From Mobula hypostoma (Eukaryota), in assembly GCF_963921235.1 (NCBI RefSeq), contig NC_086117.1:29264001-29328000 (forward strand): DNA of 64,000 bases, written 5' to 3'. The first letter of the stretch is position 1; every line of letters begins with the position of its first letter. Shown here piece after piece: positions 256 through 59,631 of the stretch. Both the position numbers and the translations under genes were made by a program. Under the pieces are notes generated by a model. It saw only the letters and a program-made list of their open reading frames with translations, was not told where the DNA came from and ran no database searches.

Positions 256-1397
256 GCTGGAGACTCATCAGCCGTCGAATAAAATTATCAAGAAGAGAGA
301 TGTGTGGAAAGCTTGGGGAAGGACATGGGGAACAAGGTTCTGAGTCAGATATTGATAGCCCATGAAGATTTTTTATTTGTCCTAGAGGGTGAGGTATTGA
401 ACTCAAGATGGAATTGTGGTATTTATTTGCTTAATATCTTTGATAAGTTCAACACCCCATTTCAGACCATGATCATTCTTAGAAATATACCTTGTGCTTT
501 GGAAAACTTTTGGACATAATAGTTAGATGCAAAACAACCAGCAGCAGAAAGGAAATTGTTATTCTTCAGGCAGCTTTAGTAATGGAGATGAGATTCTCCC
601 GTCTGCTCACGGAGGCTGAGACCATGAACAACGGGTTGTGACCAGGTGATCAGGGAGCAGAAGTCAATTAGTTGAGCAGCTGTGAAAGGTTGATAGTGTT
701 TTGCTGACGTCAGAACAAAAACTTTTCTACAAATGTTTACTACAATTTAATATTGATATGAATCTCAAAAATACATCTATACATATCGAAATATAAAATT
801 TATATAAAAATGACTGTTTACAGAAAATATACATTTTTTCTTAGGATTGACATCTTATTTCCTGATGCAAAGTTGATGGGAAATTTTCACCTTAACAGAT
901 GTTGAATACAGCCACAAGAAGTGGGCAAGGATAGGGTGGTGTGAAGGAGGGTTGTGCAATATGGCACCATTGGATATCATAAAGTTAACAGTGTGTCATT
1001 TAGTTCCTTATCTTTAAATGTGTTTTTACTATCCTTCCTGTATTCACTGAGATTCAATGCAAATTTGTCAAAGGAATACAACACAAATCTTAATATGAAC
1101 TCCAGGTAGCATAAATATCTGCAAATTGAGAGATTTTCAAGGTCTGTGAGAATGGTAGATTAGTCAAACTGCGAGAAATGGCAAGGATACAATCCAACAT
1201 GAATACAGGTGCTGCTCCACCAGATGCTACTCACTTAGAGATCCTTCCTGTTCACAGTGCTAACCTTCACACATTTGCTTATCGGCTGATATCCATTCAC
1301 AATTTTGACTTTTGCCACTGCCTTCATTGCAATTTCCTTTCCCGTGTTTAATTACCAAATAAAACAAAAGTGAAATCCGACAGCAAGATGAGTGGAC

Positions 1398-2260
1398 TCA
1401 GCACAGAAAGCCGTTTTCCAAGTGATCCTCAGGATTCACTGTTACGACAGGGGTGATGGGGATATCTGTATTAGTGGGTACTGTTTGGTTGAGATGATGT
1501 AAAATATTGGCCATCATTCTCAGCTTGAAATTAGAAGGGGAGATCTCTTGCTTAGGTTCCGCATTAATGAACCACATTGAGACGAGGGACATTGGCACAG
1601 CTGTTAGTTCAGTGGCTGGCTGCAGGCTGAGGGTAACAGTACAGGAGAGATTTTTCACTATTTCTGCAATTATAATATTAGAACCTGCTCTGGGAGAAGA
1701 ACCAGTTTGCAACCAAAGAACTTGACTGTAATCTTGCACTTTACTCATTCCATCTGTACCCAAATCCCCATCACAGACTAGCAATAAACTGGCAATAGTC
1801 TTGGAGAGGCAAAGCATTGTATTCCATGAAACACCATAACCAATTCCAATTAACTGAGCTTGGAGGATTTCAGCAGGGTCAGTGGGAAGCTGATTGAAAA
1901 TATTTTCCAGTGCTGCCCAGAAACCATCTGACTGCCTTGGGAACAAGACCCTTAGTTTACGAAGCTTTTGATTCAGTGAGTGTTGATGACTGAACTTTGG
2001 TGAGTCAAGGTGGAGGAGAAGAGGGTCATCGTGTTTGGAGCAAACTAACAAGATTGTGACGACAACAAAAATGGAAGTTAGAACTGCAGCAAGTTTTAAC
2101 GAAACAAAAAAGTCCGACTCTGGAGAGATTGAAGTCGTCTGCTCTCTTGGTTCCACTTCGTACCCACAGGAATTGTGATCAGCTCCAGGAAAACCGTACC
2201 ACTGAGCTGTATCAGTATTTGCCATCTGTTCATTGGACATATCCCTGATTGCGCTCTCAT
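1398..2260 (-). CDS. Terminal coding exon of a LAP1/LULL1 (TOR1AIP)-like type II membrane protein (TM helix plus luminal LAP1C-like domain)
   Basis: Open 863-nt exon after acceptor tttgtcacag (phase 1). Hydrophobic helix LAAVLTSIFVVVTILLVC, then LRVLFPRQSDGFW..PTDPAEIL..MLCLSKTIA and C-terminal VVTVNPEDHLENGFLC. These resemble LAP1/LULL1 motifs as recalled: FPGQ..LW, PTEPA, LKCLS, LVLPVQPE..GICL. Confidence 0.7.
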
Positions 2261-3264
2261 CTGTGACAAACATTTAAAAAAGCATGTCATACTTATTTAG
2301 TACTTTTTCTCCTAAAAAACATCTCAAAGCACTCAACATAAAATAAATACCGAAATTCAAATGAAGTGACAGATCCACAGGGAAGAGTTTAGTTCGAAAT
2401 ACAGTGGGCAGATGCTGTAACAAATGCAACTCAGATTCACAGAACAGTTTAATAACAGAGACAGGGGGCAGATTCTGTAATATACATAAATGTGGTGCCA
2501 TATTAATCACTGATACGTGGAGCAGAAATTATAGATGAACAGTATCATGTTTGATTAATGATATTGTTGGAATCCACTTCTTAAAATACTTTTTATAAGA
2601 TATTAGATGAATTAATGTAACACTAAAGTCATAGTTTAATCATAATTTGTACTTTCTAAAAACAAACTCATGTCATTTTCACAGTATGTATTTTCACAGA
2701 AAGTGGAACAGCAGTATCATAACCTTTCTCATTTTTCACTGGCTAAGTGTTAGCACAGTACCCTCATAACATAATTGTACAACTGTTGATTGGTTTATTC
2801 TTATCTAAGGAATTTCTGTTATCAGATTATAAAGGTGACGGACTTTTCAAGAGGTGCGATCTTCATTGTTGCTTTTCATTGAATCTCTGCTTTTGCCTCT
2901 CAGGCCTTCACTTAGTTTCAACTGTATCTTCGTCTAAACCTTAAAATAAATGTTCACTATTCCTCACCATTCTTGACCCCCAGAAGAACCCCAAGGATCA
3001 GAAAAAATAACAGAGATTCAACAATATGCAGGACAGACATGCTGACAAACAGAGCAAACAAAAATATGGATGGATAAACAGGATCCTTTCTCCGACAAGT
3101 GTTCAGAGTGTTTGGCAGTTTACATGGCAAGCTTCATTAGAAACTTATTAACTGATAGATAGCCCTACAATATCTTTGATGGGACAGCAAGGAAGCTTAC
3201 ATCAGGAACACCAACACATGCTTAAACATCACAATCCCCCAACTGTACTGCAAAATGGCAATAC

Positions 3265-3520
3265 ATTAATACAGCTGACAGAGCCACTGCCTGGTAGCTC
3301 CAGTGACCTGGCTTTGATGCTGACCTCAGGTGCTGATGGTGGGGTTTCCGTTAGGTGCTGCAGCTTCCTCCCACATCCCAAATACATGAGGGCTGGTAGG
3401 TTAACTAACCACTGTAAATTGCTCCCAAATGTGTAGGTGAATATGGAGTTGATGAGAATGTTGGGAGAACAAAGAAAAATTGACACTAATGCAGAGGTTT
3501 GGTTGGGCAGCAAACCCAGT
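3265..3520 (+). mobile_element. Decayed HE1/V-SINE-like tRNA-derived SINE
   Basis: V-domain-like gggtttccgttaggtgctgcagcttcctcccacatcccaaa...ggtaggttaac...tgtaaattg. Confidence 0.55.
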
Positions 3521-4565
3521 CAGCAGCTCTGACACCAGCCCATTCTCTATGACCATACAACCTTCAGGCTGGGCTTAACCTGACTGCTCCAAAGGCGACA
3601 CCGCCACAGTTTTACACAGACCAGTGGATCTAGTTGACCAGCTATTGGCCAACTGCTGGATCTGGGTCAACTATCAGAAAAGGATAGCAACATAAGTTCT
3701 TCAGTTCCTGGACACTGAGGTGCTGCATCTGGTGAGGAATCTCCTCAAACAACCAAGGTTTGTATTACCTCAGGAATGTTGCTCTGAAGACAAAAGGTGC
3801 AAACGTTACTAAGGTGTGGAACTAACCACACTCTGAATGTGTAGACTAAATGGCAGCGGGAATTTAAAGAGCTATTCTTTTTTTTTCTTTTGAATGTGTA
3901 ATTCCGAACTTTGGTGACTGCGACAGAGGTTTACAAACTTCGATAAGTTCCGGAAATCTGAACCAACGATCAGAAACTCTGAGAATTCTCAGAGCAAACA
4001 ACATTTGTGGAGGGAGAAAACAAGCTATCTCAGTATTTTCTGGGATTATAATGGAGGTGGGGGATCTAGGTCATTGCTCAGAAGCGCCGGCTGTGAGCAA
4101 CTCAATGCAGAGAAGTGGAGTCGATTGTTCTGGCAGAATCGAGGTACAAGTACAATTTAAAAAACTTCCTTGCAATGGCATTATAGGTATGCAGATTCAG
4201 ACAACACACAGAACATAAATTATACATAAATTCATTTGCCTTCACACAAGTTGCTTGACCTGCAGAGTTCTTCCAGTACTTTACCTTTGCTTCAGATTTC
4301 CAGCATCCGCAATACCTTGTGTCTCAACATTATGGAATTGTTACATTCGACTTTGCGAAAGGTGAAAACAAAAGTACGACTGTGGAGCCCTAAAGTTTCA
4401 AGAGTGAAAAGGCTGGGATAATCCCTTCCCTTCCGTTCAATCTGATTCCTGGTAGATTTTTGTCAAGTTGTGTATCCACCTGCTTCCCAGTCCATGGGAC
4501 ACTCCTCTCCAATCGGAGCAGTGACCCTTACTCCGGCCAACTCTCCCTGCCTTCTCTCTACTCAC

Positions 4566-4978
4566 CTAGGTTACGGGACGGAGCTGGCGTCACTGGGCTG
4601 TGACCAGGTGGATTTGACAGGGTTCCGGTTCCTGCTATTCGCCCGCTGGTGCCCCCAGACTCTGTGGTCCGGGACTTGGAATCTCGGCCCGGGACCAAGC
4701 TCTGGGACTCTCCTCCCTTCTCCTCCATCGCTGGAGCCAAACCGGTCAGTCCGGTTTCCGGGAGGGAGGGATCAAGAGGCGGGCTGCATCCCAGGAGATC
4801 GGGCTCGGCTTCAGCTCACTGACTCCATCCAACCCGATGCCAGTCGGATGGCGCAGCCACCAATGCATCCGTCTCGGGGCAGAGCCGGGCTGGGGGCAGC
4901 GGGAACCCGGCGCTCATGGTCCCGACCGGCTGCGTCCGGGACTCGGGACCGCCCGGAAAGGCGGCAGCCGGACAATCA
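4566..4978 (-). CDS. Upstream exon of the TOR1AIP-like gene (disordered N-terminal region; ATG at 4728, MEEKGGESQ...SRNL)
   Basis: Acceptor ttttatttccag at 4979/4980 and donor G|GTGAGT at 4565. The phase-1 donor matches the phase-1 acceptor at 2260. ATG 4728 has strong Kozak context (GCGATGG); the joined CDS is 341 aa. Confidence 0.6.
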
Positions 4979-5353: not shown

Positions 5354-8300
5354 GTGAGTGACCTCAGCCGGGGATCTGTTGTAAAGGGGCTTCATGTACT
5401 GGTCTCGTTGGGCAAAGGTTCTTTCAGCGAAGCACTAGGAGGGCCAAATCTACTCCTGGGATATCCCAGCAACACACATCAAAGTTGCTGGTGAACGCAG
5501 CAGGCCAAGCAGCATCTGTAGGAAAAGGCGCAGTCGACGTTTCAGGCGGAGACCCTTCATCAGGACTAACTGAAGGAAGAGTGAGTAAGGGATTTGAAAG
5601 CTGGAGGGGGAGATGCAAAATGATAGGAGAAGACAGGAGGGGGAGGGATGGAGCCAAGAGCTGGACAGGTGATAGGCAAAAGGGGATACGAGAGGATCAT
5701 GGGACAGGAGGTCCGGGAAGAAAGACAGGTGGGGGGGGGACCCAGAGGATGGACAAGAGGTATATTCAGAGGGACAGAGGGAGAAAAAGGAGAGTGAGAG
5801 AAAGAATGTGTGCATAAAAATGAGTAACAGATGGGGTACGAGGGGGAGGTGGGGCCTTAGCGGAAGTTTGAGAAGTCGATGTTCATGCCATCAGGTTGGA
5901 GGCTACCCAGACGGAATATAAGGTGTTGTTCCTCCAACCCGAGTGTGGCTTCATCTTTACAGTAGAGGAGGCCGTGGATAGACATGTCAGAATGGGAATG
6001 GGATGTGGAATTAAAATGTGTGGCCACTGGGAGATCCTGCTTTCTCTGGCGGACAGAGCGTAGATGTTCAGCAAAGCGGTCTCCCAGTCGGCGTCGGGTC
6101 TCGCCAATATATAAAAGGCCACATCGGGAGCACCGGACGCAGTATATCACCCCAGTCGACTCACAGGTGAAGTGATGCCTCACCTGGAAGGACTGTTTGG
6201 GGCCCTGAATGGTGGTAAAGGAGGAAGTGTAAGGGCATGTGTAGCGCTTACACGTATAAGTGCCAGGAGGGAGATCAGTGGGGAGGGATGGGGGTGACGA
6301 ATGGACAAGGGAGTTGTGTAGGGAGCGATCCCTGCGGAATGCAGAGGGGGGGGAGGGAAAGATGTGCTTAGTGGTGGGATCCCGTTGGAGGTGGCGGAAG
6401 TTACAGAGAATAATATGTTGGACCCGGAGGCTGGTGGAGTGGTAGGTGAGGACCAGGGGAACCCTATTCCTAGTGGGGTGGCGGGAGGATGGAGTGAGAG
6501 CAGATGTGCGTGAAATGGGGGAGATGCGTTTGAGAGCAGAGTTGATAGTGGAGGAAGGGAAGCCCCTTTCTTTAAAAAATGAAGACATCTCCTTCGTCCT
6601 CGAATGAAAAGCCTCATCCTGAGAGCAGATGCGACAGAGACGGAGGAATTGCGAGAAGGGGATGGCGTTTTTGCAAGAGACAGGGTGAGAAGAGGAATAG
6701 TCCAGATAGCTGTGAGAGTCAGTAGGCTTATAGTAGACATCAGTGGATAAGCTGTCTCCAGAGACAGAGACAGAAAGATCTAGAAAGGGGAGGGAGGTGT
6801 CGGAAATGGACCAGGTAAACTTGAGGGCAGGGTGAAAGTTGGAGGCAAAGTTAATAAAGTCAACGAGTTCTGCATGCGTGCTCCAGATAGCTATGAGAGT
6901 CAGTCGGCTTATAGTAAACATCAGTGGATAAGCTGTCTCCAGAGACTATTCCTCTTCTCACACTGTCTCTTGCAAAAACGCCATCCCCTTCTCGCAATTC
7001 CTCCATCTCCGCCGCATCTGCTCTCAGGATGAGGCTTTTCATTCTAGGACGAGGGAGATGTCTTCATTTTTTAAAGAAAGCGGCTTCCCTTCCTCCACTA
7101 TCAACTCTGCTCTTAAACGCATCTCCCCCATTTCACGTACATCTGCTCTCACTCCATCCTCCCACCACCCCACTAGGAATAGGGTTCCCCTGGTCCTCAC
7201 CTACCACCCCACCAGCCTCCGGGTCCAACATATTATTCTCCGTAACTTCCGCCACCTCCAACGGGATCCCACCACTAAGCACATCTTTCCCTCCCCCCCC
7301 CCCTGCATTCCGCAGGGATCGCTCCCTACACAACTCCCTTGTCCATTCGTCCCCCCATCCCTCCCCACTGATCTCCCTCCTGGCACTTATACGTGTAAGC
7401 GCTACACATGCCCTTACACTTCCTCCCTTACCACCATTCAGGGCCCCAAACAGTCCTTCCAGGTGAGGCATCACTTCACCTGTGAGTCGACTGGGGTGAT
7501 ATACTGCGTCCGGTGCTCCCGATGTGGCCTTTTATATATTGGCGAGACCCAACGCAGACTGGGAGATCGTTTTGCTGAACATCTACGCTCTGTCCGCCAG
7601 AGAAAGCAGGATCTCCCAGTGGCCACACATTTTAATTCCACATCCCATTCCCATTCTGACATGTCTATCCACGGCCTCCTCTACTGTAAAGATGAAGCCA
7701 CACTCAGGTTGGAGGAACAACACCTTATATTCCGTCTGGGTAGCCTCCAACCTGATGGCATGAACATCGACTTCTCTAACTTCCGCTAGGCCCCACCTCC
7801 CCCTCGTACCCCATCTGTTACTCATTTTTATGCACACATTCTTTCTCTCACTCTCCTTTTTCTCCCTCTGTCCCTCTGAATATACCTCTTGCCCATCCTC
7901 TGGGTCACCCCCCCCCCTTGTCTTTCTTCCTGGACCTCCTGTCCCATGATCCTCTCGTATCCCCTTTTGCCTATCACCTGTCCAGCTCTCAGCTCTATCC
8001 CTCCCCCTCCTGTCTTCTCCTATCATTTTGGATCTCCCCCTCCCCCTCCAGCTTTCAAATCCCTTACTCACTCTTCCTTCAGTTAGTCCTGACGAAGGGT
8101 CTCGGCCTGAAACGTCGACTGCGCCTCTTCCTATAGATGCTGCTTGGCCTGCTGCGTTCACCAGCAACTTTGATGTATGTTGCTTGAATTTCCAGCATCT
8201 GCAGAATTCCTGTTGCCTGGGATATCCCTCTGTCAGCTTCGTCTCTCTACCTATCACCCGGCCACATCTGGATTCGGAAACTCCGAACCTCCCACTTATC

Positions 8301-11300: not shown

Positions 11301-14300
11301 GTGGGCGAGAAGGCGGACCGACCCAGTGCGCACCAGCTCCCTCGCCACTGGCGGGTGAGACAGGCGGGTACCAGGCGGCCACACCTCACGCAAATGATAT
11401 TAATAAATGCAGGAAAACAAGCAGGAATCGCCTTGCTTACAAGAGCGCGCCAACACCTGAACAGATCTAGCACAACCAAAACAATGTGTAGCAGATTGGT
11501 ACGGTGGCCTGGAAATTTGGAAATTACAGTTGTGTGGAAAATTTGAAATCAGTGCGGATTATCGAAGGAACCGGATTACAGTTAGTCGGATTAGTGGATG
11601 TCAACCTGTACTGGATTATTTATAAAACAAGCATCCTTGTCAAGGAAAACAATCTGCCAGGTCTTGCCAGATTGTTGTGCCCAATTCTGTCCCATTGAGC
11701 TGTTCTGATTTCAGGTACTCCACCACTGTTAGCCGTGCCTTCAGCTGTCATGGTGCTAAGTTCAGAAATTTCCTCCCTAAAGATCATCCTTTAAAGTTCA
11801 TAAAATCTATTGTCTCGACCAGTTTTTTGATTATTGGCCTTTATAACTCCTTATGTGGCTCACTATGAAATTTATTGGATAATGCTCTTGTTCAGTGTTG
11901 TTACTGTATTATAATTATTGTGTTAATCTAAATTGAACGGTTGAGCAAGCTTGGATTTTTCTCTTTGGAGTGAAGGAAGATAAGAGGTGCATTGATAGCA
12001 GTGTATAAGATGATGAGAGGCATGGACAGAGTGGACAGCCAGTGGCCTTTTCCCTAAGTCGCCAGTAGCTAATATGTGAGGACATAATGTTAGGGTGATT
12101 GGTGGAAAGCTTAGGGGGAAGGAATCAAGATTGTTTATTGTTTGTCAGTACATGAGTATAAAGGAGAACAAAATGATTGTTACTGTAGATCCATTGCAGT
12201 ATTAAAAAACATGCAATGAGCATAAAAGAGCACAGTAAAAAGCACAATAAATATAAATACATAAAATTAGCTTGCATACATTAACTGATTTTAGTATACA
12301 AAGTGGCGCTAGATAAAGGAGTACCTGTACAGAAGGTGACTCTGAGAGGAAATATGAAAATTAGTGGTGGTGGTGAGGTGGGTTTCATGGGTGGACATGT
12401 TGATCAGCCTGAGGGCTGGGGAGGTAATTGTTTTTGTTTCAGAGGTAGTGGTTTTTTTAATGCAGAGTGGTAATTATATAGAGCGCATTGTTGGGGGCAT
12501 TGGAGAGGCGGATGCATCAGCGAGGTTTATAGAAACATAGAAACATAGAAAATAGGTGCAGGAGTAGGCCATTCGGCCCTTCGAGCCTGCACCGCCATTT
12601 ATTATGATCATGGCTGATCATCCAACTCAGAACCCAGCCTTCCCTCCATACCCCCTGACCCCTGTAGCCACAAGGGCCATATCTAACTTCCTTTTAAACA
12701 TAGCTAATGAACTGGCCTCAACAGTTTGCTGTGGCAGAGAATTCCACAGATTCACCACTCTCTGTGTGAAGAAGTTTTTCCTAACCTCGGTCCTAAAAGG
12801 CTTCCCCTCTATCCTCAAACTGTGACCCCTCGTTCTAGACCTCCCCAACATCGGGAACAATCTTCCTGCATCTAGCCTGTCCAATCCCTTTAGGATCTTA
12901 TACGTTTCAATCAGATCCCCCCTCAATCTTCTAAATTCCAACGAGTACAAGCCCAGTTCATCCAGTCTTTCTTCATATGAAAGACCTGCCATCCCAGGAA
13001 TCAATCTGGTGAACCTTCTTTGTACTCCCTCTATGGCACTCTAAGACACTCTTAGGTGGGCACGTGGATGAAAGAAAAATGAAGGGCTATGTGGGAGGGA
13101 AGGATTAATTGATCTTGGAGTGGGTTAGAAGGTTGGCACATTATTGTGGGCCAAAGGGCCTTTACTGTGCTGCATCGTTCTGTGTTCTAAGTTGTTGATG
13201 AGGTAGGTTGAGATAGGATAGTCTAACCAGGTGGGAGACTTCAGTTGTGTCATTGCTCATCAGTCCAGTTCTGGTTAAAGTAGGTAGATTATAGAGATCA
13301 AGGACTTTATCTGACATGAGTGATCTATCGGGAAGTGAAAGCAGTTGTTTGAAATGCAGGCAGGTTAGCACTGAGATCCTTGAGATGACTGGACTTTTCA
13401 ATAAGGTCACGGTCGATAATAGGTTCAACTCCACGTTCCTGCCTACCCCCCAAATCGCTCACCACCTTGCAGAAGGGACGACAGGTGTTGAAGGATAGAG
13501 GTCAGAATTTGTACAGTGGATTTGTGGTGTCAGCTCAGCGAGACGTCTGAACTGTGGGTGAGCAGAATTGCGACCGTTAACCCTCTGCTGTTCAACTATT
13601 CCAGAGGATGACAAAGTTTTGAACGACCCCCTGAAACATCCTGATTTCTTCCACGTCAGTGAGCTCTTCACTGTCAAAGACCTCTTCGACGCCAGGGTGC
13701 ACCATGGTCACAAAAGAGGCTGTCGGAACAGGTAGGTGTTTGCTCTTCAGGGACTTGGACTGGATAAACCACAGAGGCTGGTAAATCATAAATGATGATT
13801 GGCGGTAGGAAATACTCTGAAGGGAGTCTGATGTAACTGAAAAAAAATCCCTTTTATCTTCCATTCTGTTTGAGGTGAAACTTTAGCATAGAAAACTAAC
13901 CAGTTGAGAGAATTTGTAATTTATTTAGGTAGTGCCACTTCAGAGATAGTGTGTGAATTGTACTGAAATGTGTTATTAAATAAATTAATTTTAAGCAAAG
14001 ATTTCAAGGCGAGGCATGAATATGGAAAGTTTTGGGTTTGGGATTCCAGCTTTTGAACCATAGCTCTCAGTGTGGAGTGATGTTGGAGCATGTCCAGAGA
14101 GGGTGGAAATTTCAACCATATGTGACTTTGCCCCCAGAACTTATTAGGGAACCCATGGGATACTGCACTTTTACAGACTGCCTCTAATATATTTTGGATG
14201 TTCAGATTGTCTAATTGGCACTCTGAAATCGATAGCTAATGTGGAAATGCAGGAGTGGGCATGGATGCAGATAGTCTGTCCTTAATTGCTAAGGTAAGTG

Positions 14301-15029
14301 ATATTGTCCTCTAGGGCATCGATATGATATAGCCTCAGAGGGGGAGGTTGTTAAGTCTAAGCTTTTTAAGCGGGAGTGTGTGGTTTCTGGATGATAGAGC
14401 TAACATTACTTACTAGCTGTGCCTTGGAGGATGGCTGCTCGGTGAGGTTTGTCTGTGAAAAGAATAGGAATCATGGAAACGCTTTGCCTCTCTTTAGGCT
14501 GATGGAACCATATCTATTCGGGTGCCGATTGGAACAAGACATTATAGACTTGGATCAGACGGTTCTTCACCTTCAGCAGGCTCTGAACTTCACTGCCCAT
14601 TGTGCATATCGGAAAGGGATCATCCTGTTCATAAGTCGAGCCCGTCAGTTTTCTCATCTGATAGAGAAAACAGCGCAGGAGAGTGGAGAGTACGCGCACA
14701 CCAGATATTGGCAAGGTGGGCTCTTGACCAATGCGCACGTCCAGTATGGCCTAGGTGTTCGCCTGCCTGATCTCATTATCTTTATCAACACCCTGAACAA
14801 TGTATTTGAACAGCATGTTGCCGTGCGAGATGCTGCCAAAATGAACATTCCAACAGTAGGAATAGTGGACAGTAACTGTAATCCAAGTCTCATTGCTTAT
14901 CCCATCCCAGGGAATGATGACTCTCCTTCGGCTGTTAAACTTTATTGTAAACTTTTTAAAATGACCATTCTCCGGGCAAAGGACAAAAGACGTCAAATGG
15001 ACCTTCTCCATGGACTCCAGAAAGAATGA
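5329..15029 (+). CDS. MRPS2: Mitochondrial ribosomal protein S2 (uS2m), spliced CDS join(5329-5353,8692-8811,13605-13731,14498-15029), 267 aa
   Basis: All three introns are GT-AG with compatible phases (1,1,2). uS2 motifs [40 protein letters not shown] and YPIPGNDDS are present. Confidence 0.95.
5532..5567 (-). ncRNA. Minimal type I hammerhead ribozyme motif in the inverted pseudo-LTR
   Basis: Reverse complement reads agtc-CTGATGA-agggtctccgcct-GAAAC-GTC-gact. Confidence 0.8.
5857..6881 (-). pseudogene. PLE ORF remnant: RT C-terminus plus GIY-YIG endonuclease (left arm)
   Basis: ORF 5857-6921 with LPFLDL, YYKPTD and YIGET motifs. It is truncated just downstream of the expected RT catalytic DD motif, so it is non-autonomous. 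Confidence 0.88.
6944..7789 (+). pseudogene. PLE ORF remnant with GIY-YIG endonuclease (right arm)
   Basis: ORF 7058-7789 is nearly identical to the left arm, with compensating frameshifts at poly-C tracts. Confidence 0.88.
8085..8120 (+). ncRNA. Minimal type I hammerhead ribozyme motif in the PLE pseudo-LTR
   Basis: agtc-CTGACGA-agggtctcggcct-GAAAC-GTC-gact: stem I agtc/gact, intact CUGANGA and GAAA core, palindromic loopless stem III (ACGT), GUC cleavage triplet. Confidence 0.85.
8692..8811 (+). CDS. MRPS2: MRPS2 exon 2
   Basis: Acceptor ctttgcctctcttag and donor AG|gtcagt; 120 nt, open in the phase-1 frame ([12 protein letters not shown]...PPQT). Confidence 0.75.
9930..10560 (+). mobile_element. 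Old L2-type LINE RT fragment (continues at about 11700-11930)
   Basis: Degenerate FHIYAxxxxLY and LNIxKTE RT segments; an L2-like 3' end (gccttcagctg...ttcctccctaaa) follows the MITE. Confidence 0.45.
10861..11140 (-). mobile_element. Non-LTR retroelement 3' tail fused to the rRNA fragment
   Basis: Ends in ...atttcaggacgtatattgtatacatttctctaacgttaaatgaacctctgaa. A related tail occurs at about 55530-56050 and resembles the Rex1/Babar-like 3' ends at about 48300-48375. Confidence 0.6.
11141..11237 (-). pseudogene. 28S rRNA 5'-end fragment (about 97 nt), preceded by GC-rich ITS2-like sequence (11238-11385)
   Basis: Reverse complement cgacttcagatcagatgtggtgacccgcggaatttaagcacattactaagcggaggaaaaggaactaacaaggattccctcagtaactgtgagtgaa matches the conserved 28S start, including the ITS4 primer region. 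Confidence 0.9.
11935..13190 (+). mobile_element. Old CR1 3' fragment interrupted by two nested insertions
   Basis: Collinear CR1 pieces at 11935-12120, 12440-12528 and 13040-13190. Confidence 0.65.
12529..13038 (-). mobile_element. Young CR1 LINE 3' fragment
   Basis: ORF 12627-13004 ([48 protein letters not shown]) and a (ctatgttt)n tail. Confidence 0.92.
13605..13731 (+). CDS. MRPS2: MRPS2 exon 3
   Basis: [43 protein letters not shown]; canonical ag/gt boundaries. Confidence 0.93.
14498..15029 (+). CDS. MRPS2: MRPS2 exon 4 (terminal coding exon)
   Basis: LMEPYLFG...IPGNDDS...GLQKE*; acceptor ctctctttag. Confidence 0.95.
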
Positions 15030-22258: not shown

Positions 22259-36404
<14,146 letters not shown>

Positions 36405-36919
36405 CCTCGGACCGGCCTCGCTGCCCGCACAACCCGGCACGGCACGACCCCCACTCTCCCTCTTCCTCGTAACGGGAGCTGGGCGAAGGAACCGACGCCC
36501 CTCGCTGCAGCCCAGGACCTAGGCAGGCATTAACGCCTACCCTCGGGCAGCGATCGCAGCGCCGAGCCCCATCAGCAGAGAGCAGGAGCCGCGGCTTCGC
36601 TCTGCTCGGCGCCGCTTGTGCGGCCACTCCGGGTTCGGTAAAGTCCTCGGCTGCAGCGAGCAGGATCGGGTGGGCATGCGCCGGGCATCCAAACGGGGGA
36701 GGAGGAGGAGGCGGGGGAGGAGGGGTGGGAGCGCGTCCCACGCCTGCCAATCCGCAGGAGGACGGGGAGGAGGTGCGAGTCCCGCCAGGGACCCGACCCA
36801 CGGGAACGGGAGCAGTAGGATGCCAACCATCGGAGATGGAGTCGGGTCGGATGGAGCAGAACCCGAAGGAAATGTAAGCACATCCGAAGCGAACTCGCCG
36901 TGGAAAACAGCAGCAAAGG

Positions 36920-37790
36920 AATCTCTAAAGAAGAATTCCACCGGCAGAAATTCTCCTCAACAGGAACCCATTTTTAGAAATTTTCTTAAACAACAATCCC
37001 ATCCATTTCAATTCATTTAATCGCAATCCCAGCAACAAGAGTCTTATTGAACGGAATTCCATCAACAGGAATTATATTAGCATGAACCCCGTCATCAGAA
37101 GTATTCCCAGCAGGAATCCCATCAACAGGAATAACTCCAACAGGAATCCCATCAATAAGGTTCTTGTCAACAGCAATCACGGTAACAGGAATCTTATCAG
37201 CAAGAAAATCCACAGCAGGAATCTAATCAGTAGGATTCCCATCAGCATTAATCTCCATAACCGGAATCACATCAACAGAAATGTCATTAATAGGAATCCC
37301 ATCAGCAGGAACCTTGAGCTGAAGGGCCTGTTTCTCTGCTGTACTGTTCTATGTTCTTTGTTAATATCACCAATAGTAATCAGATCAATAGGAATCTCTC
37401 AAAAGGTATCTCATCATTAGCAATCTTCCTAACACAAATGTCCCTAACATGAATCTCAAACGTAATTTCATGAATAAGAATATTATCAATGGAAATCTCA
37501 TAGACAAGGACCCCTCAACAGGAATCCAATCAACATAGATCCTAATAACAGGAATCTTATTGGCAAGAATCCCATCAATAGAAATCTCCTCAAAAGGAAT
37601 GTCACTGACAGGAATGCCATCAACAGAAATCTCCCCAGCAGGAATCCATTGGGGATTCTGTCAACAGGATTACATCAATAAAAGTACAAGCATTGGAACC
37701 ACACCATCTGTCACACAGACAAATCTTACACCAGTGGAGATTCCATTGGTAGGTTAATGGCAGTGACACGAATAGAGAATCAGCAATGTC
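36920..37790 (+). repeat. Degenerate tandem repeat of about 15 bp (consensus aacaggaatcccatc)
   Basis: Dozens of imperfect copies, for example cagcaggaatcccatcaacaggaataactccaacaggaatcccatc. Confidence 0.8.
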
Positions 37791-41859: not shown

Positions 41860-42388
41860 AGAACATAGAATAGTACAGCACAGTACAGGCCCTTCGGCCC
41901 ACAATGTTGTGCCGACCCTCAAACCCTGCCTCCCATATAAGCCCCCACCTTAAATTCCTCCATATACCTGTCTAGTAGTCTCTTAAATTTCACTAGTGTA
42001 TCTGCCTCCACCACTGACTCAGGCAGTGCATTCCAAGCACCAACCACTCTCTGAGTAAAAAACCTTCCTGTAATATCCCCCTTGAACTTCCCACCCTTTA
42101 CCTTAAAGCCATGTCCTCTTGTATTGAGCAGCGGTGCCCTGGGAAAGAGGCGCTGGCTGTCCACTCTATCTATTCCTCATTATCTTGTACACCTCTATCA
42201 TGTCTCCTCTCCTCCTCCTTCTCTCCAAAGAGTAAAGCTCTAGCTCCCTTAATCTCTGATCATAATGCATACTTTCTAAACCAGGCAGCATCCTGGTAAA
42301 TCTCCTCTGTACCCTTTCCAATGCTTCCACATCCTTCCTATAGTGAGGTGACCAGAACTGGACATAGTACTCCAAGTGTGGCCTAACA
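41860..42388 (-). mobile_element. Young CR1 3' fragment, same subfamily as 42862-46400
   Basis: Near-identical inverted match to about 45870-46400. Confidence 0.92.
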
Positions 42389-42861
42389 CTTGTGACATAT
42401 TTTGAGTTAATTGAATCAATGTGTTTATGATGAATTGGAGAATATTCTTCACATGAAGAGTAATACTGGAGTTGGAGGAATGCTTTCTCTCTTTGCAAGA
42501 TCGTTTAGTTCAAAGTAATTCTGGTATGGAGTACTTTATCTTATTTAAAAGCTCTTGGAACACAGAGAGAAGCAATCTGCAAAACTCAGATTCAATGTGT
42601 GAAGAAATGAATCTGTTTAAAGATTGATTGTAAACCACTTCTCTTCATGTGAAGAGCAGGATTGGAGTAAGAGCAGTGGTTCATCTCATTGTAAGACTTA
42701 ACTCTATTCTGTTTAGAACAAAGAAAAATGTCTATAAAGCTGAGTTTGCACTGCACATTGACTGATGCTCCATTTAAACACAACAATGACCCTGACCCTT
42801 CTTGCTTGTTGACGTTGCATTAGTTAGCAACTCAGTAAATGTGGGAGGCTTGATTAATCTA

Positions 42862-45800
42862 TTATCTGGCACTGAGTCTGACCCTGTGGTGCAGAAGGGT
42901 GGGACGGAGAAGAGGAGAGCTGTCGTCATTGGAGACTCTATAGTCAGGGGAGCAGACAGGAGATTTTGTGGACGTGAGAAGGACACCCGCATGGTTTGTT
43001 GCCTCCCAGGTGTCAGGGTCCAGGATGTCTCTGACTGGGTGCACGACATCCTGGTACGAGAGGGAAAGCAACCAGAAGTCGTGATACATGTTGGCACCAA
43101 CAACATAGGCAGGAAGAGGGATGAGGTCCTGAAGTGTGAGTTTCGGGAATTAGGCAGAAGGCTGAAGAACAGGACCTCAAGGGTGACGTTCTCAGGATTG
43201 CTGCCAGTGCTACGTGACAGAGATGGTAAGAATTAGAGGAGATGGCAGTTGAATGCGTGGCTGAGGAATTGGTGCAGGGATCAGGGTTTTAGATTTTTAG
43301 ATCATTGGGATCTCTTCTGGGGAAGGTGGGATCTGTACAGATTGGATGGGTTGCACCTGAACTAGAGGGGGAGCAATATCCTTGCAAGTAGGTTTGCTTG
43401 CATGGTTCGGGAGGGTTTAAACTAATTTGCGAGGGGGATGGGACCCAGAGCAGTGAAAGAAGTGCATGGAGTAAAGCCAGATCTAACATACAGAGAGGCT
43501 TTGAGGAAGGAGAAGCAGAATAAACGGTGTAAAGACAGTAAGGTAGAAGGGCTGAAATGTGTGTACCTCAATGCAAGAAGCATCAGGAACAAAGGTGATG
43601 AACTGAGAGCTTGGATACATACATGGAATTATGATGTAGTGGCCATTACAAGGACTTGGCTGGCACCAGGGCAGGAATGGATTCTCAATATTCCTGGACT
43701 TCAGTGCTTTAAAAGGGATAGAGAGGGCGGGAAAAGGGGAGGAGGGGTGGCATTACTGGTCAGGGATACTATTACAGCTACAGAAAGGGTGGGTAATGTA
43801 GCAGGATCCTCTTTTGAGTCAATATGGGTGGAAGTCAGGAACAGGAAGGGAGCAGTTACTCTATTGGGGGTATTCTATAGGCCCCCTGGTAGCAGCAGAG
43901 ATACAGAGGAGCAGATTGGGAGGCAGATTTTGGAAAGGTGCAAAAATAACAGGGTTGTTATCATGGGTGACTTTAACTTCCCTAATATTGATTGGCACCC
44001 GATTAGTTCCAAGGGTTTAGATGGGGCAGAATTTGTTAAGTGTGTCCAGGATGGATTCCTGCCACAGTATGTGGACAGGCCGACCAGGGGGAATGCCATA
44101 CTAGATCTAGTACTAGGTAATGAACCGGGTTAGGTCACAGATCTCTCAGTGGGTGAGCATCTGGGGGACAGTGACCACCGCTCCCTGGCCTTTATAATTA
44201 TCATGGAAAAGGATAGAATCAAAGAGGACAGGAAAATTTTTAATTGGGGAAAGGCAAATTATGAGGCTATAAGGCTAGAACTTGCGGGTGTGAATTGGGA
44301 TGATGTTTTTGCAGGGAAATGTACTATGGACATGTGGTCGATGTTTAGAGATCTCTTGCGGGATGTAAGGGATAAATTTGTCCCGGTGAGGAAGATAAAG
44401 AATGGTAGGGTGAAGGAACCATGGGTGACAAGTGAGGTGGAAAATCTAGTCAGGTGGAAGAGGGCAGCATACATGAGGTTTCGGAAGCAAGGATCAGATG
44501 GGTCTATTGAGGAATATAGGGAAGCAAGAAAGGAGCTTATGAAGGGGCTGAGAAGAGCAAGAAGGGGGCATGAGAAGGCCTTGGTGAGTAGGGTAAAGGA
44601 AACCCCAAGGCATTCTTCAATTATGTGAAGAAAAAAAGGATGACAGGAGTGAAGGTAGGACCGATTAGAGATAAAGGTGGGAATATGTGCCTGGAGACTG
44701 TGGAAGTGAGCGAGGTACTCAATGAATACTTCTCTTCGGTATTCACCAATGAGGGGGAACTTGATGATGGTGAGGACAATATGAGTGAGGTTGATGTTCT
44801 GAAGCATGTTGATATTAAGGGAGAGGATGTGTTGGAGTTGTTAAAATACATTAGGACAGATAAGTCCCCGGGGCCTGACGGAATATTCCCCAGGCTGCTC
44901 CAGGAGGTGAGGGAAGAGATTGCTGAGCCTCTGGCGAGGATCTTTACGTACTCGTTGTCCACGGGAATGGTACCGGAGGACTGGAGGGAGGTGAATGTTG
45001 TTCCCTTGTTCAAAAAAGGTAGTAGGGATAGTCCGGGTAATTATAGACCAGTGAGCCTTACATCTGTGGTGGGAAAGCTGTTGGAAAAGATTCTTAGAGA
45101 TAGGATCTATAGGCACTTAGAGAATTATGGTCTGATCAGGGACTGTCAGCATGGCTTTGTGAAGGGCAGATCGTGTCTAACAAGCCTGATAGAGTTCTTT
45201 GAGGAGGTGACCAGGCATATAGATGAGGGTAGTGCAGTGGATGTGATCTATATGGATTTTAGTAAGGCATTTGACAAGGTTCCACACAGTAGGCTTATTC
45301 AGAAAGTTAGAAGGCATGGGATCCAGGGAAGTTTGGCTAGGTGGATTCAGAATTGGCTTGCCTGCAGAAGGCAAAGGGTGGTGGTGGAGGGAGTACATTC
45401 AGATTGGAGGATTGTGACTAGTGGTGTCCTACAAGGATCTGTTCTGGGACCTCTACTTTTCGTGATTTTTATTAACAACCTGGATGTGGGGGTAGAAGGG
45501 TTGGTTGGCAAGTTTGCAGACGACACAAAGGTTGGTGGTGTTGTAGATAGTGTAGAGGATTGTCAAAGATTGCAGAGAGACATTGATAGGATGCAGAAGT
45601 GGGCTGAGAAGTGGCAGATGGAGTTCAACCCGGAGAAGTGTGAGGTGGTACACTTCGGAAGGACAAACTCCAAGGCAGAGTACAAAGTAAATGGCAGGAT
45701 ACTTGGTAGTGTGGAGGAGCAGAGGGATCTCGGGGTACATGTCCACAGATCCCTGAAAGTTGCCTCACAGGTGGATAGGGTAGTTAAGAAAGCTTATGGG

Positions 45801-46400
45801 GTGTTAGCTTTCATAAGTCGAGGGATAGAGTTTAAGAGTCGTGATGTAATGATGCAGCTCTATAAAACTCTGGTTCGGCCACACTTGGAGTATTGTGTCC
45901 AGTTCTGGTCACCCCACTATAGGAAGGATGTGGAAGCATTGGAAAGGGTACAGAGGAGATTTACCAGGATGCTGCCTGGTTTTGAAAGTATGCATTATGA
46001 TCAGAGATTAAGGGAGCTAGGGCTTTACTCTTTGGAGAGAAGGAGGATGAGAGGAGACATGATAGAGGTGTACAAGATAAATAAGAGGAATAGATAGAGT
46101 GGATAGCCAGCGCCTCTTCCCCAGGGCACCACTGCTCAATACAAGAGGACATGGCTTTAAGGTAAGGGGTGGGAAGTTCAAGGGGGATATTAGAGGAAGG
46201 TTTTTTTACTCAGAGAATGGTTGGTGCGTGGAATGCACTGCCTGAGTCAGTGGTGGAGGCAGATACACTAGTGAAGTTTAAGAGACTACTAGACAGGAAT
46301 ATGGAGGAATCTAAGGTGGAGGCTTATATGGGAGGCAGGGTTTGAGGGTCGGCACAACATTGTGGGCCGAAGGGCCTGTACTGTGCTGTACTATTCTATG
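42862..46400 (+). mobile_element. Near full-length CR1 LINE: ORF1 SGNH esterase plus ORF2 APE endonuclease-RT, disabled
   Basis: AVVIGDSIVRG, VVIHVGTNN and DGLHLN (esterase); LNARSI, MGDFNFP and GDSDH (APE); DFSKAFD, QGSVLGP and KFADD (RT). Stops at about 43234 and 44131; frameshifts at about 44600 and 46080. Confidence 0.95.
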
Positions 46401-58887: not shown

Positions 58888-59330
58888 AATAGACAATAGA
58901 CAATAGGACAGGAGTAGGCCATTCGGCCCTTCGAGCCAGCACTACCATTCACTGTGATCATGGCTGATCATCCACAATCAGTATCCAGTTCCTGCCTTAT
59001 CCCCATAACCTTTGATTCCACTATCTTTAAGAGCTCTATCCATCTCTTTCTTGAAAGCATCCAGAGACTTGGCCTCCACAGCCTTCTGGGGCAGAGCATT
59101 CCATATATCCACCACTCTCTGGGTGAAAAAGTTTTTCTTGAACTCTGTTCTAAATGGCCTACCCCTTATTCTTAAACTGTGGCCTCTGGTTCTGGACTCA
59201 CCCATCAGCGGGAACATGCTTCCTGCCTCCAGCGTGTCCAATCCCTTAATAATCTTATATGTTTCAATTAGATCCCCTCTCAGCCTTCTAAATTCCAGAG
59301 AATATAAGCCCAGTTGCTCCAATCTTTCAA
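58888..59330 (-). mobile_element. Young CR1 3' fragment inserted into a palindromic PLE mini-element (58858-59528)
   Basis: [29 protein letters not shown]...; flanking cagcc direct repeat at 58883-58887 and 59331-59335. Confidence 0.88.
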
Positions 59331-59631
59331 CAGCCGATCGAGCAGTGTTTGTGAGGGGAGAGGAATTGTTGATGGTTTGGATCAAAACCCTGCATCAGGA
59401 CTGTTGATGCTTCAGGTCAAAACCTTTTTGACCCAAACCATCAACATTTCTATTCCGTCCTACAGATGCTGCTTGACCCACTGGTTCCTTCAATAGGTTG
59501 TGAGTTTCTGCAGATTCCAGCATCTGTCATATCTGTGCCAGCTGGGAATAGTTCAACCTGAGTTGCCTGTCCCAAAGTTCTGAAGCATATTACAGGGTCT
59601 AATCACTTTCCCAAAAGAAGTTCAGCATAAT

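Follow-up and report, generated by a model that had tools for sequence, protein, structure and literature searches.

The two-exon gene LOC134359924, located on the minus strand of the window (the whole stretch of 64,000 nucleotides of Mobula hypostoma DNA that was analysed), is transcribed, spliced and under purifying selection, and its 341 aa product belongs to a family that appears to lack the arginine finger and is best explained as an old paralogue of LAP1 (TOR1AIP1) and LULL1 (TOR1AIP2), the two activators of torsins. To the best explanation as a whole, namely an expressed and selected type II membrane paralogue that lacks the finger and is a putative non-activating partner of torsins, we assign a probability of about 0.45.

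Torsins are, to our knowledge, the only AAA+ ATPases of the lumen of the ER and the nuclear envelope, and their activity depends on an arginine finger contributed by LAP1 or LULL1. The protein behind primary dystonia (DYT1) is TorsinA, and mutations in LAP1 also cause disease. LAP1 and LULL1 are the only torsin cofactors of vertebrates that we know of, and no paper on a third TOR1AIP-type paralogue came up in a literature search. What appears to be new in the family described here is a LAP1/LULL1 scaffold minus its defining catalytic residue, encoded at a locus of its own, old, conserved, and outside the capture of Pfam. Over 400 million years of conservation without a finger would make a third paralogue a natural test of what a cofactor scaffold does once it is unable to activate, and the family might represent a physiological negative regulator, for which the field currently has engineered mutants only.

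Joining positions 4728-4566 and 2260-1398 of the window gives a reading frame of 1,026 nt, whose translation is identical to the RefSeq protein titled [quoted passage not shown]. The coding part of exon 1 (4566..4728, minus strand; 163 nt, ATG at 4728-4726) encodes residues 1-54 and provides the first base of codon 55, and it is preceded by a 5' UTR that extends at least to 4774 (minus strand), the reach of the spliced RNA contig. The terminal coding exon, exon 2 (1398..2260, minus strand), encodes the rest of residue 55 through residue 341 and the stop codon TGA at 1400-1398, in exact match with the protein, and is followed by a 3' UTR (1200..1397, minus strand), with RNA contigs extending about 380-455 bases beyond 1200. 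Between both exons lies a GT..AG intron of 2,305 nt (2261..4565, minus strand), with a donor in which G is followed by GTGAGT at 4566/4565, and an acceptor formed by a polypyrimidine tract and an AG ending at 2261. The mechanical open reading frame around exon 2 spans 1398-2273 (minus strand) and the true exon starts at 2260; the limits that the sequence-only reading had given for its feature, 1398-2260, are identical to those of the true exon.

The splice was seen in contigs of two public Mobula hypostoma runs (X2 and X3, from one study), in which exactly 2261-4565 is skipped; the skipped 2,305 bases read CT..AC at their ends on the plus strand, equivalent to GT..AG for the gene. Exon 2 was covered by contigs of runs X1, X2, X3 and X5, the coverage of the intron by RNA contigs was nearly nil, and in a second study a contig from a related species covers exon 2 and differs at 8 of 1,063 bases. 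Because the contigs join 2260 to 4566 and leave the intron almost bare, LOC134359924 is transcribed and spliced as modelled.

The protein consists of a short N-terminal part (about 108 residues), one transmembrane helix and a C-terminal domain of roughly 210 aa. The helix (residues 109-129; 2037..2099, minus strand) is the only place where the Kyte-Doolittle mean exceeds 1.6 over 19 residues, with a peak of 2.69 at 111-129, and it is preceded by a juxtamembrane SDF motif (S103-D104), cytosolic and invariant in the whole family. The C-terminal domain (residues 130-341; 1401..2036, minus strand) was delimited as LAP1/LULL1-like and AAA+-like by family profiles against the PDB and by VIA-align. 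Both N-x-S/T sequons of the protein (N258 and N312) lie in its C-terminal 212 residues, and since the single transmembrane helix is N-terminal to the domain that holds them, the arrangement fits a type II membrane protein with a predicted luminal C-terminal domain. Membership of the ER/nuclear-envelope system would be the best explanation for a protein of this kind.

All the motifs quoted in the sequence-only reading occur in the protein: FPRQSDGFW at residues 161-169, PTDPA at 180-184, C205-L-S, V329-N-P-E332 and the terminal C341. F161, P162, Q164 and W169 are invariant in the family and form an FPxQ....W block common to LULL1; its earlier rendering as FP.Q...W was right about the presence of the block and wrong about the spacing, since four residues, not three, separate Q from W, the same as in LULL1. 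Cys205, the cysteine of the CLS motif (codon at 1809..1811, minus strand), aligns with LAP1 C424 and LULL1 C310, and Cys341 (codon at 1401..1403, minus strand), the last residue of the protein, falls in a column conserved in at least 90% of the family and is the equivalent of LAP1 C582 and LULL1 C468. As V329-N-P-E332 also aligns with LAP1 V571-Q-P-E574, the alignments agree with the former claim that the disulfide cysteines and V.PE are kept. The disulfide C424-C582 of LAP1 (C310-C468 in LULL1) ties the C-terminus to helix alpha1 (PMC4358337, PMC4999309), and at sequence level the cysteine pair for this staple is retained in the Mobula protein.

The Mobula protein resembles LULL1 (TOR1AIP2; PDB 5J1S/5J1T) in its predicted type II topology, in the size of its luminal C-terminal domain (about 210-230 residues), for which an AAA+-like fold with no small domain is predicted, in FPxQ....W at the start of alpha0, in the equivalents of C310 (CLS) and of C468 near the terminus, and in a short cytosolic part instead of a long lamin-binding one. 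On the other hand, it has no Arg at R449, its last strand is preceded by a shorter segment, the TorsinA contacts R276, K283, E385, E415 and R419 are unmatched, and identity is about 15%; moreover, its gene is at another locus (beside MRPS2 in cartilaginous fishes), and the protein is unrecognised by Pfam LAP1_C. LAP1 (TOR1AIP1; PDB 4TVS) is the best profile match, with an end-to-end alignment that includes the equivalents of C424/C582 and a V.PE motif 9 residues before the terminal cysteine (8 in LAP1), and the Mobula domain, with no Walker A or B, would be nucleotide-free like that of LAP1. In contrast to LAP1, the Mobula protein has Ile321 at R563 and, by alignment, Val256 at E482, and Ala270 replaces C496, termed the most conserved cysteine of LAP1; its N-terminal part has about 108 residues, while that of LAP1 has about 340 and binds lamin and chromatin. 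Sequence and model together suggest that an AAA+-like nucleotide-free scaffold is kept in the C-terminal domain.

Close parallels are the engineered mutants LAP1 R563A/G and LULL1 R449A, which are likewise AAA+-like cofactor scaffolds minus the activating Arg; R563A and R449A lower ATPase stimulation (PMC4358337), and R563G is activation-deficient in cells (PMC7773337). Much like these mutants, the Mobula domain would still dock from the side on that face of a torsin protomer which binds ATP, where without a finger it could not complete the active site, and its role would be that of a non-activating partner, acting as a membrane anchor, as an ATP-state trap or as a competitor of LAP1/LULL1. 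That putative torsin binding has been retained together with a non-activating role is a tentative proposal, to which we give slightly less than an even chance. In the finger mutants the rest of the torsin interface is intact, whereas in the Mobula protein the other mapped contact residues are changed too, so that its binding to torsins is not to be assumed.

The charge contacts of LULL1 to TorsinA involve R276, K283, E385, E415 and R419 (PMC4999309). In HMM alignments, which may misplace residues of the mid-part of the domain by one or two positions, they correspond to A171, Q178, L273 (with E272 adjacent), K300 and A305 of the Mobula protein, respectively. Mean pairwise identity within the family is 0.28 for the whole luminal domain, and falls to 0.15 in the finger loop and 0.17 in the alpha2 region, which carry indels and are among the least conserved parts; higher conservation was found in alpha0 (0.43), alpha1 (0.48), the last strand (0.46) and the C-tail (0.60). 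Among the four interface elements of LULL1 (alpha0, alpha2, alpha4 and alpha5), alpha0 is the only one clearly constrained in the family. With its contacts changed and alpha2 poorly conserved, a lost or altered interface fits the data as well as a decoy does.

These observations lend themselves to an alternative in which protein and ancestry are the same and the family has left the torsin system, with the AAA+-like domain serving as a stable luminal scaffold for another partner or role in the lumen of the ER or the nuclear envelope. By alignment, neither the finger nor any of the five charge-contact residues of LULL1 has an equivalent in the Mobula protein, the variation of the finger loop and the alpha2 region is as described, and the best conserved parts are core and staple elements plus the cytosolic SDF motif, which has no known torsin role; furthermore, several large clades with torsins have lost the family or at least yielded no member of it. 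However, FPxQxExxW, where alpha0 begins, is the luminal block with the highest conservation, and LULL1 has it too, as part of an interface helix; residues of the interface may also change in step with those of a torsin paralogue dedicated to the family, and no search suggested an alternative partner or activity. On the interface comparison by itself, a torsin-independent role, the second option of the sequence-only reading, would be about as likely as that of a decoy; taking all the evidence into account, we consider it possible, though on balance unlikely.

LAP1 R563 and LULL1 R449 constitute the strictly conserved arginine finger of these cofactors (PMC4358337, PMC4999309). In the HMMER alignment, which is of low confidence in the C-terminal third, where the AF2 model is also poor, LAP1 R563 (chain position 211 of 4TVS) pairs with Ile321 of the Mobula protein (codon at 1461..1463, minus strand), within the segment NTDIPITPVVTVNPE (residues 318-332); the LAP1 string that the sequence-only reading had given for comparison (LWSR ISHLVLPVQPE) was found in the 4TVS chain of this alignment. 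The last 39 residues of the Mobula protein (303-341) contain no Arg and no Lys, so that no finger would arise under any reasonable re-alignment, and between the alpha4-like helix and the PE motif there are 21 residues, three of them prolines, versus 35 in LAP1, a difference of 14. The earlier statement that there is no Arg at or near the finger position is therefore upheld, and the Mobula protein very probably lacks a finger.

The finger column is occupied by I in batoids (4/4), V in the chimaera, G in sturgeons, S in the lungfish, V or M in amphibians, N, H or Q in squamates and in sequence P0011, and A in turtles and crocodilians, with R in no member, which suggests that the family as a whole, and not just rays or chondrichthyans, is without the finger. 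An Arg one column after the finger position is conserved in four turtles, two crocodilians and P0011, a sequence that groups with squamates in the tree. It sits in the context P[ND]KLW..AR followed by SLPVL, resembling the PDKLNGLWSR followed by ISHLVL of LAP1, and could be a finger retained or regained in these sauropsids.

It might still be argued that the Mobula protein is a torsin activator, with a misaligned finger or with another basic residue (K300, R302 or R245) reaching the active site. The low confidence of the alignment in the C-terminal third, the pLDDT below 50 at model residues 159-175 and 180-192, and the Arg one column off in turtles, crocodilians and one lepidosaur-like sequence, by which part of the family may have a finger, speak for this option. 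It is nevertheless improbable, as the region free of Arg and Lys takes in all the sites between the alpha4-like helix and the V.PE strand where a finger could reasonably be placed, the segment is much shortened with respect to LAP1 and carries three prolines, and the column holds Ile in all four batoids and Val in the chimaera.

Homology of the Mobula C-terminal domain with LAP1/LULL1 is in our judgement highly probable, the main evidence being the profile result, with the fold evidence supportive and not decisive. A sequence search of the PDB with the Mobula protein alone produced no match, and the same was true for a profile of the four batoids and for a profile of turtles and crocodilians alone. 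A 17-sequence family profile searched against 177,635 PDB sequences returned human LAP1 (4tvs_A, E=1.4e-6) at rank 1 and LULL1 (5j1s_B, E=2.9e-4) at rank 2, with the next match at E about 1. With a 27-sequence profile of the luminal domain, ranks 1 and 2 were again 4tvs_A (E=6.4e-6, over positions 9-228 of the 231 of the chain) and 5j1s_B (E=2.8e-3), and for both profiles the third-best match lay at E 0.24 to 1. Because the single sequence and the batoid profile find nothing and the wider family profile does, the link between the Mobula protein and LAP1 is transitive.

A Pfam scan of the four batoid proteins, including that of Mobula, yielded zero families at E values up to 10. When the family was scanned member by member, LAP1_C (PF05609) was the Pfam family matched by most single members, over the same part of the model in 3 of the 17 (chimaera, E=5.7e-4, 19.5 bits; lizard, 5.2e-3; caecilian, 0.022), all of them below the gathering score of 26.8 bits. 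A language-model lookup gave LAP1_C clusters for all ten of the best named matches (score 0.85, 182 shared features).

For the fold, AF2 run on the four-sequence alignment gave a model with a pLDDT of 42, unusable, and the model from the 27-sequence alignment reached a pLDDT of 63 and a pTM of 0.62, with the weak stretches at 159-175 and 180-192 already mentioned. VIA-align of this second model against 48,161 representative chains had as its best match 5j1s_B, the LULL1 chain of the TorsinA-LULL1 complex, with 143 residues spanning the whole model, an rmsd of 6.6 A and a Z of 8.3, a value still in the range reachable by models with no true match; the next row had a Z of 5.3, and the lower rows were the AAA+ modules of Lon, ClpB, ClpA, CbbX, HslU and ClpX at Z 4-5. 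Foldseek of the same model against the PDB detected no LAP1 match and START-like rows only (TM about 0.2), an Atlas shape search produced START/SRPBCC-like rows with TM <0.45 and no LAP1, and Foldseek against AFDB clusters returned only members of the family itself and no LAP1 clusters. The low-TM rows were read as a product of the weak middle of the AF2 model and not as a sign of a START fold. Of the checks named in the sequence-only reading, the HMM match came from the family profiles, and a LAP1-like fold drew support from LULL1 as the top VIA-align row, whereas Pfam LAP1_C stays below threshold and gives no match for the Mobula protein itself.

If the likeness to LAP1/LULL1 were the product of chance or convergence in an unrelated, lineage-specific membrane protein, the lack of any Pfam match above threshold, the failure of Foldseek to find a match in the PDB or among LAP1 clusters in the AFDB, the blank PDB searches with a profile restricted to batoids or to turtles plus crocodilians, and a Z of 8.3 attainable by models lacking a true match would all be accounted for. 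But four different methods, applied to very large libraries, converge on one small family, the alignment keeps the same order from end to end of the domain, and the protein agrees with LAP1/LULL1 in membrane topology, in the length of the domain, in the two disulfide cysteines and in the terminal V.PE...C, making coincidence a very doubtful explanation.

Selection on the gene behind this putative LAP1/LULL1 paralogue was measured among batoids. Codon alignments of the terminal exon of Mobula, sawfish and skate (three pairs), analyzed by the Nei-Gojobori method with bootstrap, gave dN/dS values of 0.24-0.30 in all three pairs (about 0.27), and the luminal part alone gave 0.26-0.30, with upper bootstrap limits of <=0.45. 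The exon is thus under purifying selection, and this comparison of orthologues, which the sequence-only reading had proposed, rules out neutrality. The layout is also common to sawfish, skate, chimaera, turtle and sterlet, in all of which one large terminal exon encodes the transmembrane helix and the whole C-terminal domain. The low dN/dS and the conservation of this layout across species exclude a pseudogene, a reading also at odds with the spliced RNA and with a frame intact across gnathostomes. A decaying or non-functional gene copy, in spite of the loss of a "strictly conserved" catalytic residue and of a patchy taxonomic distribution, is extremely improbable in view of a frame intact in >25 species spanning the gnathostome tree, a dN/dS of about 0.27, a spliced transcript, and conserved synteny and exon structure.

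An exhaustive HMM search across 1.84 billion representatives found 12 further distant full-length relatives, and the relatives known come from chimaera, lungfish, turtle, axolotl, gavial, caecilian, lizard, gecko, snake, sturgeon and bichir, all of them "uncharacterized". In an alignment-based search of a 5.8-billion-protein set, the matches listed were mainly from snakes. The gene tree tracks the species tree, with one copy per species and with support of 100/98 for chondrichthyans, 100/99 for bichir plus sturgeons, 99/97 for sauropsids and 100/100 for squamates. As the gene tree follows the species tree and the gene is single-copy, the family would be at least as old as the gnathostome ancestor, and it appears to have been conserved since. 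Searches with ray, family and turtle queries found no member in sharks, teleosts, frogs, birds or mammals, which is absence of evidence only.

LOC134359924 is arranged head-to-head with MRPS2 in the window and also in sawfish, skate and chimaera, and it is not at the TOR1AIP locus. The terminal exon of MRPS2 was located at 14376-15029 (plus strand; Ribosomal_S2, PF00318, E=7e-39), and beyond MRPS2 lies an exon of a FAM69/DIPK1-type kinase at 22259-23017 (minus strand; PIP49_C, PF12260, E=1.5e-62). In a lizard, the gene is found between an MFS transporter and an RNF183-type RING gene, with PRPF4 next; the sequences flanking the turtle, crocodile and sturgeon loci gave no information on synteny. 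The description of the protein as a divergent LAP1/LULL1-like cofactor consequently needs qualification: remote homologue is supported, but the protein is not the ray version of TOR1AIP1/2, belonging instead to a separate, old, single-copy family beside MRPS2.

In the human genome, MRPS2 and DIPK1B are presumably at 9q34.3 and RNF183 and PRPF4 at 9q32, with TOR1AIP1/2 at what we take to be 1q25. The regions 9q32-q34 and 1q25 are well-known paralogous regions, as illustrated by ABL1/ABL2, TOR1A-TOR1B/TOR3A, LHX3/LHX4 and QSOX2/QSOX1, and from this placement a whole-genome-duplication twin of the TOR1AIP ancestor emerges as a natural hypothesis for the origin of the family. In a more speculative scenario, which we regard as rather unlikely in its entirety, the family would descend from an ancestral third partner of the LAP1/LULL1 type, possibly such a twin of the TOR1AIP1/2 ancestor, that lost its Arg early, became a membrane-bound torsin brake or ATP-state trap, and was lost in mammals, birds and teleosts; if this were true, its loss in these groups would explain the lack of study.

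The occurrence of the family in tractable species (axolotl, lizards and sturgeon) makes binding, localisation and knock-out work feasible. Its analysis also exposes an annotation gap, as the family is uncaptured by Pfam and its database names are "uncharacterized" or wrong. The adjoining RNF183-type RING gene seen in a lizard explains why some lizard entries have been misnamed RNF183 and why the two genes are fused in one model of 494 aa. More than 25 RefSeq entries of the family are labelled "uncharacterized", and some carry the erroneous names RNF183 or FAM47E-like.

Within the C-terminal 25 residues, a P[ND]KLW..AR motif is conserved in turtles, crocodilians and one lepidosaur-like sequence of the family (proteins P0007, P0047-P0049, P0009, P0018 and P0011), and the Arg of this motif, which is missing from the remaining members, aligns one column away from the position of the LAP1 finger and is a candidate for a working finger. 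Variation was also found in the cysteine pair equivalent to the LAP1 disulfide. The CLS cysteine is absent from bichir and sturgeons, being replaced by His or Arg (P0012, P0015 and P0031), and the C-terminal cysteine is retained in sturgeons; a disulfide staple in the manner of LAP1 cannot be formed in either group.

Several members of the family are recorded under other names. In lacertid lizards (Zootoca locus L006, 10001-15801; proteins P0020-P0022), members of 325-326 aa are named "E3 ubiquitin-protein ligase RNF183 isoform X1/X2" by NCBI, and a 494-aa model from Podarcis lilfordi joins the family gene to the true RNF183, a protein of 196 aa encoded 3.5 kb downstream of the family gene. 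A turtle member is listed in AlphaFold DB as "FAM47E-like". Both names and the 494-aa fusion model are annotation errors.

LOC134359924 and MRPS2, whose terminal exon lies at window positions 14376-15029 on the plus strand (Pfam Ribosomal_S2, E=7e-39), form a head-to-head pair, an arrangement shared with sawfish, skate and chimaera. Between the LOC134359924 promoter and MRPS2 sits a mirror-image pair of retroelement copies, represented by long ORFs at 5857-6921 (minus strand) and 7058-7789 (plus strand) that encode near-identical proteins with a common tail (...[16 protein letters not shown]). Three successive plus-strand ORFs of 231, 159 and 490 aa at 43438-46097 look like a LINE-type endonuclease and reverse transcriptase, and the motif at their C-terminal end (...[14 protein letters not shown]...) recurs in shorter fragments at 12627-13004, 29299-29718, 42166-42498 and 58978-59385. 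A large exon of a FAM69/DIPK1-type kinase was located at 22259-23017 on the minus strand (PIP49_C, E=1.5e-62). At 36150-37020 the DNA is rich in G+C, and both strands carry overlapping ORFs rich in Pro, Gly and Arg; this stretch resembles a first exon or a CpG-island promoter, which may belong to the DIPK1-type gene.
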